A DNA stretch of 63,728 nucleotides, the filler included, from Klebsormidium nitens (Eukaryota; Plantae; Klebsormidiophyceae): assembly GCA_000708835.1 (NCBI GenBank). It is 4 parts of 4 records of this genome, joined end to end, with 100 filler letters (N's around TTAATTAATTAA, not from the genome) between each part and the next. Parts side by side here need not be neighbours in the genome. Positions count along the whole stretch, not along the records: positions 26,380 to 42,045 come from DF238009.1; 3 more parts are not named here. One strand, 5' to 3'. Positions 32,862 to 36,675 of this stretch are shown piece by piece. The notes beneath the pieces were generated by a model. It was not told where the DNA came from. It worked only from the letters and a program-made list of their open reading frames with translations, and did not search any database. The stretch's first letter is position 1, and each line of letters begins with the position of its first letter. A program made the translations under genes and the position numbers.

Positions 32862-35800
32862 ATGGCCCCCATACTGGCTGGAACCCTGCGCTATGCAATC
32901 CCAATATTGGGAATCCTCTGTGCATTGGGGCTCTTGAGAGGAGTATGGTCCGCAACCATAGAGGAGATCGACGATCTCGTCCAGGGCCCACTCTGGAACC
33001 AGACGAGCATCACGATCTGGGGCGGCCGATTATCGGGTCAGATCCCCCCAGAGCTCGGCAGCCTGACCAACCTCACCTCCCTCAGTATCTCCTACACCAG
33101 CCTCTCCGGCCCCATCCCCCCAGAACTCAGCAATCTGACCAAACTCACCTTCCTCCACATATCCCAAACCAGCCTCTCAGGCCCCATCCCCCCCGAACTC
33201 GGCAGGCTGATCAATCTCACCGAACTCCACCTCACCTTTAACAACCTCTCCGGGCCAATCCCCCCCGAGCTCGGCCGCCTGTCCAATCTCACCAGACTCT
33301 CCCTCTACAACAACCGCCTCTCCGGTCACATCCCCCCCGAGTTCGGCACCCTGACCAAACTCACATCTCTTTCCCTTTCCAACAACAGGCTGTCAGGCTC
33401 CATCCCCCCAGTGATAGGCAATCTTACCAGCCTCGCCTCCGTCGACCTGTCAGCCAATCCTTTTTCCGGATCCATCCCTCCTCAAATTGGCAAACTCGCC
33501 GGACTCGGCTCCCTCTCTCTCTCCGCCTGCAACCTCTCAAGCCCCATTCCGTCTGAACTCAACGGCTTGAAAAAACTACAATACCTTAAGCTGCAGCATA
33601 ATAAGCTTTCCGGCTCTATTCCTCCTTGGTTTGGCAGCCTGACGACCCTCCGGAACCTTTGTCTAAATAACAACACCCTCTCCGGCCCCATCCCCCGAGA
33701 GCTCGGCAGGCTGACCAGCCTCTTCGACCTCGGCCTCAACAACAACATCCTCTCTGGCCCCATCCCTCCGGAGCTCGGCAGGCTGACCAGCCTCACCGAC
33801 CTCGGCCTCAACAACAACACCCTCTCCGGCCCCATTCCCCCAGAGCTTGGCAGGCTGACCAGCCTCTTCGACCTCCGTCTCGCCTTTAACACCCTCTCCG
33901 GCCCCATCCCCCTAGAGCTCGGCAGCCTGACCCGCCTCTGGCACCTTAGCGTTGCCTTCAATAACTTATCCGGCCCCATATCCCCAGAGCTTGGCCAACT
34001 GGCAGGGCTCGGCACCCTCGACCTCTCCTCCAACAACCTCTCCGGACCCATACCCCCAGAGCTCGGCCAGCTGGCAGGGCTCGACACCCTCGACCTGTCC
34101 TCAAACAACCTCTCCGGACCCATACCCCCAGAGCTCGGCCAGCTGGCAGGGCTCGATACCCTCGACCTCTCCTCAAACAACCTCTCTGGACCCATACCCC
34201 CAGAGCTTGGCCAACTGGCAGGGCTCGACACCCTCGACCTTGCCTTCAACAACCTCTCCGGACCCTTACCCCCAGAGTTTGGCCAACTGGCAGGGCTCGA
34301 CACCCTCGACCTCCAAAACAACAACATTACAGGCCCGATACCTTGTGAAGTCCTCGTTGGGGTGGGTTCTGAAGGCAACAATATATTTGGAGGGAATAGT
34401 ATCACGCTCCCCTCAGATTTTGGATACTTGGAGGACGTGACAATTCTCGACCTCTCCTTCCCCGGTATCGGGATGTCCGGCACCATCCCCCCCGAGCTCG
34501 GCAGCCTGTCCAACCTCTTCTTCCTCGACCTCTCCTCCAACGACCTGTCAGGCCCAATCCCCCCCGAGCTCGGCCGCTTGTCCAATCTCACCATCCTCTT
34601 TCTCGACAACAACAGCTTCTCCGGCTCCATCCCCCCCGAGCTCGGCGGCCTGATCGAACTCAGCATCCTCCACCTCGCCTTCAATAACCTCTCCGGCCCC
34701 ATCCCCCCGGAGCTCGGCCGACTGGCCAACCTCCAAATCCTCAGCCTCTCAGAAAATAGTCTCTCCGGCCCGCTTCCCCTCGAGCTCGGCCGCCTAAGCA
34801 GCCTGAACTCTCTGGTCGCAATCAACAACCGCCTCTCCGGTCACATCCCTCCCGAGCTCGGCAGCCTGACCCTCAGTTCGCTTGACCTCTCCAACAACCA
34901 TTTGTCAGGCCCCATCCCCTCTGAGTTCGGCAGCCTGGTCGAACTCACCAACCTCTCCCTCTCCAACAACAGCCTCTCCGGCCGCATTCCCCCCGAGCTC
35001 GGCAATCTGACCCGTCTTAGGTCTATTGACCTCTCCAACAACGGCCTCTCCGGCCCCATCCCCTCTGAGCTCGGTCGTCTGCTTGCCATCAATACCCTCA
35101 ACCTCAGTTCCACGGACACGTCTTGCGAAATGCTCGACATGTCCCGCTTGAACGCTATCTCGAGATTGGGCCTTCCATGCGCGCCACCCCCTTCTTTCAA
35201 GCACACCAATCTTACCTACTTGGCGCTATCCGTGAGCAACAACAATCCCACCATTCACCTGGATCTCTCGTCGGTGCCAGACTCCTGCAAGATCGTCAAC
35301 CTGACGGGCCCGCATTTCCGTCTCAAGAGTATCCGATTCTGGGGGGCTTGCGAAGAGGGCTGCGTCGTGAGTTTGGCGGGAACGGGGGCCAAACTGGATC
35401 GCAGCACGCGCAGGAAGGTGTGCTTGAGTCGGATATCGGTCTTCCTTTCGGGGGACATTCCCATCCCGCAGTACAATGGAACCGTTTTTTTAGGCGTTCT
35501 CAGCAACGCGCACGGTAACTACACCTTGGCGGACCCGGACTTCGTTGATCTGATCGACCTGGGGCGCGACGGGAGGGCGTACACGGGGTCGGGTTCTCGA
35601 GGGTCCAGGCGGGCAATCTCTGCGGCAATCCCGAGGCGAAGGCGGTCACGGCGCTCGTCCTCGGGGCATTCGCCGTCCTCTTGCTGGTGGCGACCATCAC
35701 CGTCGTCGTGGTGGCCCGCTGGCGCCGACGAGTCCGGGGTGCAGGGCTCGAGACTGCAGATGGGGGGCGACTCGGGTAAGTCGTTGGAATGGTTTTTGGA

Positions 35801-36675
35801 GTTCGAAGACGTCTCTCCTCCTGCCCGACTTTCCGCACTTTGAATCTCTGGTGATCTGGTCACGCCGCCGTGATGAGATTTGTTGTTTGGAAGGGATTCT
35901 TAATCCTTGCGCATGCTTCCGCAGCTTCAGGCTTGCTGGGCTTTACCTGTGGGGAGCTATAATGGGCGTCCTGCCCGTCGTGGACGTCATCACCGACTTT
36001 CTCGTGCTGAGCGAGGTCTGGGGGGCGTGGCCGATGTGGGTGGTGCTGGCGTCGGTCTGCGCGCCCTTCGTGTGGGGGTCTTTCGCGGTGGCCAAGGCCT
36101 GGTCGTCGAGCGGGAGTCCGGTGCGCGGGTGGAAGGGATTGCGGGTCAGATGGCTGTGGCCGCTGCCGGCTCTGAGTGATGAGCAGCCGGGGACCTCGGA
36201 CGGGCTGTCTCCGCGCGCCACGGTTTCAGCGATCCTGCTGCTACCCCTGGGCCTCTTGGGGGTGCTCGTCCAGGACCTGCTGTCCGTGGCGGAGAGGTTC
36301 GGGCTTCATCTGGCGACCGGGGACCGGATCGTCGTGTTCGAGCGCTATCACGAGTCCCGGGTGGTGGTCGAGCTGCTCCTGGAGTCCCTGCCCCAGGCGG
36401 TGTTCCAGACGGGACTGTACATTGTGGGGAGCTCGAGGGCGACCCGCATCTACATCGACCAGCGCATCTTCGTGCAGTCCATCGTGGTATCGCTGTGCAG
36501 TCTGTCGGTGCATTACTGCAGCATGCTCTGGGAGGCGGTTTACGAGGGCAGGTCGCTGGTCAGGGTGTTCCTAGACCGATTCAGGGGTGCGGGGCAGCCG
36601 AGTTTTGTGACGGCGACCTCCCATCCGAGCGAGGACGAAGAAGTGGAGGGGTTGAGTCAGAAGATGGTCATTTGA
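32862..36675 (+). CDS. LRR-TM-XK-like membrane protein, copy 2 (signal peptide, ~29 LRRs, Cys-containing stalk, TM, XK/Xkr-like multipass domain)
   Basis: Exon 1 is 32862-35775, with a 1-nt deficit in the G-run at 35585-35588 relative to copy 1 (possibly a homopolymer error). Intron 35776-35924 is phase-consistent in both copies. Exon 2 (35925-36675) has VDVITD and ELLLESLPQAVFQ. Confidence 0.85.

Follow-up and report, generated by a model that had tools for sequence, protein, structure and literature searches.

A leucine-rich repeat receptor gene of the alga Klebsormidium nitens encodes a membrane domain that resembles the N-terminal half of XK-related proteins

We analysed a window of 63,728 nucleotides (nt; the whole stretch of DNA under study, filler included) from the streptophyte alga Klebsormidium nitens (GenBank assembly GCA_000708835.1). 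One piece of the window, positions 26380-42045 with about 60% G+C (record DF238009.1), contains a two-exon gene on the + strand at 32862-36675, hereafter paralogue B, and a related copy upstream of it, paralogue A (26380-28383, +), which is cut by the left edge of the piece. The first exon of paralogue B encodes a plant-type leucine-rich repeat (LRR) ectodomain and a transmembrane (TM) helix, and the second a multipass membrane domain. We found that this membrane domain shares its fold, its helix order and its signature polar residues with the N-terminal repeat (ND) of XK-related proteins, and that the second repeat is absent.

Exon 1 (32862-35775, +), delimited by open reading frame (ORF) search, translation and Pfam, encodes a putative signal peptide, the LRR ectodomain, a juxtamembrane region, a stalk, a single TM helix (TM0) and the start of a cytoplasmic linker. 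The LRR ORF itself runs over 32862-35843 (+, 993 codons by ORF search and three-frame translation) and opens with MAPILAGTLRYAIPILGILCALGLLRGVWS (32862-32951, +), which, read by eye, looks like a signal peptide; the K. nitens orthologue (MAPILARTLRGFIPILGILCGWG) and the K. nitens protein P0006 begin in the same way. The repeats that follow (33000-35111, +) match LRR_1 in Pfam with an E value of 1.2e-78, and also LRR_8, LRR_4 and LRR_14. Regular expressions and a register count give 26 regular 24-residue LxxLxLxxNxLSGxIP units plus one or two irregular ones, that is about 27-28 plant-type LRRs arranged in two blocks with an irregular segment of about 35 residues between them. An initial annotation of this DNA had proposed a signal peptide, about 29 plant-type LRRs and a cysteine-containing stalk with a TM helix; the type of the array is confirmed and its count is slightly lower. 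Four consecutive LRR units at about 33972-34260 (+) are near-identical (LSSNNLSGPIPPELGQLAGLDTLD) and suggest that part of the array has recently expanded in tandem. Many repeat-driven joints were also seen in the contigs placed on the LRR region.

Between the array and the membrane lies a juxtamembrane ectodomain region of about 158 amino acids (aa; 35112-35584, +) that contains several cysteines and has no Pfam name; its conservation extends to paralogue A and to the K. nitens proteins P0006 and P0004. The stalk and TM of the initial annotation are both present downstream of it, at 35585-35740. The stalk motif GVGFSRVQAGNLCGNPEA (35585-35638, +, frame-3 translation) carries a family-invariant cysteine (C16 of alignment A2) just outside the membrane, and TM0 consists of the translated helix AVTALVLGAFAVLLLVATITVVVVA with a positive-inside stop-transfer signal, RWRRRVRG (35642-35740, +). 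Judged from this translation, the LRR ectodomain is of type I, and TM0 and the RWRRR stop-transfer place the start of the following domain in the cytoplasm, as in the XK-related (Xkr) proteins.

The reading frame of TM0 (that of position 35402) ends at a GTAAGT donor, which sets the end of exon 1 at 35775 in the three-frame translation, and an acceptor at 35924/35925 joins this frame in phase to the exon-2 ORF ending at 36675. The intron (35776-35924, +, 149 nt, GT..AG) splits a Gly codon into GG and C. Contigs from three public runs of three studies (X1, X2 and X3, only guessed to be RNA; contigs 93-97% alike to the window) skip exactly 149 nt with GT..AG ends (joint 35774/35924, cut +1), in line with the junction that the initial annotation had put forward for a transcript check, and those of run X3 overlap from 35493, at the end of the ectodomain, to 36634. 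The intron-less form of these contigs is most simply a transcript. Furthermore, the place and phase of the intron are common to paralogue A (27480-27626, 147 nt) and the K. nitens orthologue (149 nt), so the claim of one shared intron in both paralogues stands. Between paralogues A and B, the intron is 74.5% identical and the flanking exons 89-91%.

That the LRR part and exon 2 might be two separate genes finds no support, because the contigs join the TM exon to exon 2 and because LRRs, stalk, TM and membrane domain are found in one chain in the K. nitens proteins P0006, P0014 and P0039 and in several metagenomic proteins. The single gene assumed in the initial annotation is thereby upheld. 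At the K. nitens orthologous locus L004 (DF237014.1), the gene is divided by an assembly gap at 5883-6000 and has been called as two, one a 343-aa LRR part and the other the 'partial' GAQ80901.1, and the public annotation therefore conceals the full architecture of that copy. The two parts of the gene also differ in base composition: the coding-strand GC skew is strongly negative (-0.33 to -0.39) over the LRR exon (32880-35380) and positive (+0.14 to +0.16), with a negative AT skew, over the membrane domain (35380-36880), a flip for which amino-acid and codon composition (Leu/Pro/Ser versus Gly/Val/Trp) is the probable reason.

In the assembly, stalk and TM of paralogue B (35585-35775) are out of frame with the LRR ORF (frame of 35402 versus 35400). 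Exon 1 (2914 nt) and the coding part of exon 2 (748 nt) add up to 3662 nt, one base below 1,221 codons, and DNA alignment together with this arithmetic places the one-base deficit in a G-run at 35585-35588 (+) that has four G in paralogue B and five in its relatives. The frame is open with five G in three of them: paralogue A, which reads ...GRAYTGVGFSRVQAGNLCGNPEAKVVT...TM...RWRRR in a single frame across the run; K. nitens locus L004, which reads TACACGGGGGTCGG at the site; and a 93%-alike contig of run X3, whose difference from the window is a 'G put in behind 35584'. A short intron at 35585 in place of a frameshift was rejected, since the three relatives read through with one extra G and since the stalk motif AYTGVGFxRVQxGNLCGNPEA, with its invariant Cys, is a conserved feature of the family and runs across the site. 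Of the in-frame splice from LRRs to multipass domain claimed in the initial annotation, the junction and the phase between TM and exon 2 hold, and the frame between the LRRs and the stalk does not in the assembled sequence; the G-run, also flagged there, has its fifth G in the X3 contig.

The missing G is either a homopolymer assembly error or a recent inactivation. In the second case, real slippage loss in a birth-and-death receptor cluster would leave paralogue B recently dead, with no full-length protein, and this possibility, which concerns the copy and not the family, falls only a little short of even odds. It draws on the five G of the three relatives, on the near absence of the stretch from runs labelled with the genome's own species, and on paralogue A (exon 1 end 27479, exon 2 27627-28383), where the five G and the open stalk and TM frame are followed by an in-frame TAA at 27673-27675 inside the first membrane helix (TM1), at a position that is a Leu codon in both paralogue B and K. 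nitens. Such a stop is hard to blame on sequencing, and decay thus does occur in the cluster. However, a one-base loss in a five-G homopolymer is also the commonest assembly error, and no other lesion was seen over the 1,221 codons. Paralogues A and B share 88% protein identity over exon 2, with a synonymous divergence (dS) of 0.205 and a ratio of nonsynonymous to synonymous divergence (dN/dS) of 0.36; the ratio is 0.43 over the end of the ectodomain. These values of 0.36-0.43 show long purifying selection, which also weighs against a dead copy.

Translation, an AlphaFold2 (AF2) model and fold searches define exon 2 (35925-36675, +) as coding for an XK-ND-like membrane domain of 249 aa, closed by the stop codon at 36673-36675. 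The AF2 model, built on the family alignment, has a pLDDT of 84.8 and a pTM of 0.79. It predicts two long helices (TM1, 35929-36015; TM2, 36031-36108), a loop with two shorter intramembrane helices (36211-36297) and a beta-hairpin (36304-36336), and two further long helices (TM3, 36340-36426; TM4, 36460-36546), all on the + strand. In a VIA-align structural comparison against 48,161 PDB chains, the top match was rat XKR9 (7p16_A, Z 9.4, root-mean-square deviation 3.4 Å, 150 residues aligned, chain 4-190), followed by human XKR4 (9boj_B, Z 7.7) and human XKR8 (8xej_X, Z 6.9, chain 7-182), and in each of these three Xkr cluster representatives the alignment is confined to the N-terminal repeat. 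Next in the list come connexins (Z 6.5), with pannexins also within Z 6-6.5. When the K. nitens orthologue was modelled independently, with stalk and TM0 included, the same three came out on top, with Z of 10.2, 8.7 and 7.6; in this second model, the predicted helix at residues 19-54 corresponds to TM0 and lies outside the XKR match. Re-ranking of the Foldseek candidates with pdb_via likewise put 7dce_X, 9boj and 8xej_X (XKR8, XKR4) on top. At modest Z (6.9-10.2), the modelled arrangement agrees with that of an ND, with TM1 and TM2 splayed around an intramembrane helix, a kinked TM3 and TM4.

Sequence profiles point to the same half of the same family. XK-related (PF09815) is the only Pfam family matched by more than one family member below E 0.01 (2 of 27 members, best E 2.4e-4), and in the member P0042 (18.9 bits, E 7.9e-4) residues 274-473 match positions 3-174 of the 337 positions of the profile, that is its first half. 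A PF09815-bearing cluster is also among the three nearest by language-model features, both for the window's domain and for a member only 28% identical to it. The nearest ESM Atlas clusters consist of unnamed proteins of 200-270 aa from eukaryotes (Mucoromycota, Foraminifera, Mollusca), and in one of them a quarter of the members carry PF09815; free-standing proteins of half-XK size may be widespread.

No second XK repeat follows: TM4 leads into a short tail and the stop codon, the orthologues terminate at the same position, and the second repeat is absent from every family member. Downstream exons bearing it were considered and rejected, since orthologues and paralogues stop at the same point and the contigs enter the 3' flank without a joint. 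The alignments to N-terminal repeats and the P0042 match to profile positions 3-174 fit the initial proposal that the domain is one of the two internal repeats of an XK protein, and the XK-like fold proposed there is supported by XKR9, XKR4 and XKR8 taking ranks 1-3 of the 48,161 chains with both models.

The two motifs singled out in the initial annotation are at 35980-35997 (+; VDVITD in TM1, exon-2 residues 19-24, with D20 and D24 in i/i+4 spacing) and at 36370-36408 (+; ELLLESLPQAVFQ in TM3, exon-2 residues 149-161, with E149, E153, S154, P156 and Q157). Conservation in the family (alignment A1) is 15/23 for D20, 19/24 for D24, 24/27 for P156 and 22/27 for Q157. The window's protein retains D20, D24, E149, E153, P156 and Q157, with E149 one turn before E153. 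The D-x3-D spacing in TM1 and the E-S-x-P-Q spacing in TM3 equal those of D125/D129 and E313/P316 in human Xkr4 (hXkr4), an equivalence drawn by helix and spacing; on that basis, the acidic TM1/TM3 cluster and the P-Q kink of XK-related proteins are present in the algal domain.

Structural studies give these residues a context. XKR9 is built from two related repeats, each with four TM helices and a partly inserted helix; its hydrophilic TM3 has a kink at a conserved PQL, and throughout the family acidic residues cluster on TM1 and TM3 of the ND (PMC8298096). In hXkr4, D125, D129 and E313 correspond to D26, D30 and E141 of Xkr8 and form a membrane-embedded negative surface, TM3 breaks at P316, three residues past E313, and the scrambling rates of D125N, D129N and E313Q were assayed against wild type, with p-values shown as significant (PMC12334663). 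The same 2025 work locates a membrane-thinning acidic vestibule in the ND, and describes the ND and the second, C-terminal repeat (CD) as related by pseudo-two-fold symmetry and in contact mainly via TM3 and TM4 (PMC12334663).

A number of observations weigh against this interpretation. Foldseek against the PDB gave no match at E <= 0.001, with XKR8 at ranks 21 and 24, and the fold search of the ESM Atlas returned unrelated bacterial rows only, at TM-scores < 0.4. By the tool's own note, VIA-align Z values of 7-10 are within the chance range for helical bundles. The window's domain has no Pfam family at E <= 1, and even the best family member is below the PF09815 gathering cut-off (18.9 versus 24.8 bits). 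The family profile found nothing at E <= 10 among PDB sequences; P0042 and P0038, searched singly against the same sequences, gave chance matches or nothing, and a word-indexed homology search with the family alignment recovered close family members and no XK protein. Of 27 members, 10 have Glu, 11 have Arg and 4 have Gln at position E153, and the acidic cluster is therefore not universal. With regard to the gene, both copies in the piece carry a lesion, each a different one, and the spliced contigs, just 93-97% alike to the window, therefore come from relatives and not from its strain. The Foldseek check proposed for exon 2 in the initial annotation thus does not reach significance, whereas VIA-align places Xkr proteins in the top three. 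The likeness to an XK ND is drawn from four things taken together: Xkr proteins rank 1-3 twice, always through the N-terminal repeat, the Pfam match is co-linear, and the motifs agree.

The family to which this gene belongs is small and lineage-restricted. When exon 2 was searched exhaustively with HMMER against 1.84 billion representatives, 55 proteins were recovered, of which 19 reach E <= 1e-30. N-terminal LRRs occur in 18 of 20 long members that were scanned; of the remaining two, one has an LRR ORF just upstream on its contig. Every member with a named organism is from Klebsormidium nitens, the closest being 85-88% identical, and the K. nitens members are named 'hypothetical', 'FLS2' or 'L domain-like' in the database. 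Being below the cut-off and made of one repeat, the domain is not a formal member of PF09815.

Taken together, these results are best explained by a lineage-restricted LRR receptor with a half-XK (ND-like) unit that may scramble lipids by pairing, a reading to which we assign a probability of roughly 0.6. Its parts differ in strength: the architecture and the ND-like homology are very probably correct, and scrambling by dimerisation is a tentative step. Under this hypothesis, the LRR ectodomain would sense an extracellular ligand, and two receptors would pair, either driven by the ligand or through the invariant stalk cysteine. The two ND-like halves might then pack with pseudo-two-fold symmetry, as ND and CD do in Xkr proteins, and the buried acidic cluster of D20, D24, E149 and E153 could perturb the bilayer and scramble lipids. 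The output of such a receptor would be altered membrane lipid asymmetry, not phosphorylation. A more far-reaching version, which we regard as rather unlikely, is a ligand-gated lipid scramblase in which LRRs bring half-XK units together into an Xkr-like eight-helix assembly, and which would also be a living single-repeat stage from before the two-repeat XK proteins.

Some XK-family proteins act mainly as partners, XK with Kell and VPS13A and Xkr8 with basigin. The algal domain could likewise be a true relative of the XK ND that does not scramble lipids but serves for docking or assembly and keeps the receptor in a complex; the partner might be, for example, a co-receptor, a second half-unit or a bridge-like protein of lipid transfer. 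The fold and motif evidence is identical for this alternative. XK-family proteins have been solved together with single-pass glycoproteins (XKR8-basigin, 7dce and 8xej), and here a single-pass ectodomain is fused to the domain; the Arg at E153 in 11 of 27 members speaks against one fixed catalytic-like site, and the role of many XK family members is still elusive (PMC8298096). However, the window's protein keeps D20, D24, E149, E153, P156 and Q157, residues tied to scrambling by Xkr4 and Xkr8, and no candidate partner was identified in this analysis; we consider a pure docking role unlikely. Very unlikely is that exon 2 is an unrelated four-helix membrane bundle, such as a channel or a tetraspan-like organiser, with short motifs matching by chance: the lack of a significant sequence match to solved Xkr proteins, the non-significant Foldseek result, the empty Atlas fold search and Z values that are modest for helical proteins, with connexins and pannexins next at Z 6-6.5, would all suit it, but three Xkr proteins lead 48,161 chains in two independent models through the ND only, the sub-threshold Pfam match is co-linear with the same half of the profile, two motifs are in matching helices at matching spacing, and the order of TM1, TM2, intramembrane helix, TM3 and TM4 fits the description of the ND.

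Returning to a receptor with a half-XK unit, we compared it with known systems. With the XK-related proteins (Xkr8, Xkr9, Xkr4, CED-8 and XK; PF09815) it shares the ND helix order, the kinked hydrophilic TM3, the cytoplasmic start, D-x3-D and E-S-x-P-Q. Whereas those proteins have ND and CD and eight TM helices, the algal domain has one repeat of about 250 aa with four TM helices and no CD, its host is a streptophyte alga, and its similarity stays below the Pfam cut-off; the algal protein adds a TM helix and a large LRR ectodomain, and no caspase-type C-terminal plug was identified in it. With plant LRR receptor-like kinases (RLKs) and receptor-like proteins (RLPs) of the FLS2, BRI1, Cf-9 and RLP23 type it has in common the signal peptide, the 24-residue LSGxIP repeats, the single TM and the basic stop-transfer, and one K. 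nitens member is auto-named 'FLS2'. Unlike in LRR-RLKs, no kinase was detected by Pfam, either in exon 2 or in the family members that were scanned, and unlike in LRR-RLPs, a 249-aa multipass domain stands where these have a short cytoplasmic tail. The protein is thus neither an RLK nor an RLP, in keeping with the initial remark that this architecture is not known from land-plant RLPs or RLKs.

Two further systems combine similar parts. In Xkr8-basigin/neuroplastin and XK-Kell, an XK-fold protein is associated with a single-pass glycoprotein that has a large ectodomain (PDB titles). In contrast to these complexes, the algal parts form one polypeptide, the ectodomain is made of LRRs and is not Ig- or peptidase-like, and the XK part is a half-unit. 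XK and Kell are linked by a disulfide, with which the invariant algal Cys at the outer edge of the membrane can be compared. LRRC8/SWELL1 proteins likewise have a four-TM membrane domain and an LRR domain in one chain. In LRRC8, cytosolic LRRs at the C-terminus follow an N-terminal, pannexin-like four-TM domain, whereas the algal LRRs are N-terminal behind a signal peptide, in the reverse order, and the fold is different; in VIA-align, LRRC8A reaches Z 5.0 against the exon-2 model, and LRRC8A and pannexins at Z 5-6 are weaker than the Xkr proteins.

Within the same piece, an ORF at 39311-41035 (+, 574 aa) had been considered as the second paralogue and was rejected as an unrelated gene, the true paralogue being the upstream copy at 26380-28383. 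It encodes an MLKL_N four-helix bundle (E 1.2e-11) followed by a Tyr/Ser-Thr kinase domain (E 2.6e-63), that is a plant-MLKL-like kinase gene of cell-death type 2.6 kb downstream of the receptor gene. A further ORF at 41323-42045 (+), cut by the right edge, has Sel1 repeats (E 2.6e-15). In the K. nitens gene model KFL_010600020 (P0002), the XK-like domain occurs together with a Sel1 match (PF08238); either this Sel1 neighbourhood may be conserved or the model may fuse two genes. Between the two paralogues, an ORF at 31042-31749 (+) shows a weak, sub-threshold TFIIB-repeat match (E 8.9e-4), and no other recognisable feature was found in 28600-32800.

In full-text literature searches, no publication connected XK with Klebsormidium or with LRRs in algae, and none of the few papers returned for Xkr with algae or for Klebsormidium with scramblase deals, by title or abstract, with an LRR/half-XK architecture. 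The pairing of an LRR ectodomain with a half-XK unit is unreported, and current annotation ('hypothetical protein', 'FLS2-like') overlooks the half-XK domain. LRR receptors of the plant lineage are known to signal through kinases, their own or a partner's. If our interpretation is right, this charophyte receptor would have an output that acts on the lipid bilayer itself, different from a kinase output; were it a ligand-gated scramblase, an extracellular cue would directly become a loss of lipid asymmetry, and it would be the first XK-fold signalling protein of the plant lineage. For the scramblase field, the family offers a natural ND-only protein, possibly dimerising, with which it could be tested whether that half suffices, and it bears on the evolution of the two-repeat XK fold.

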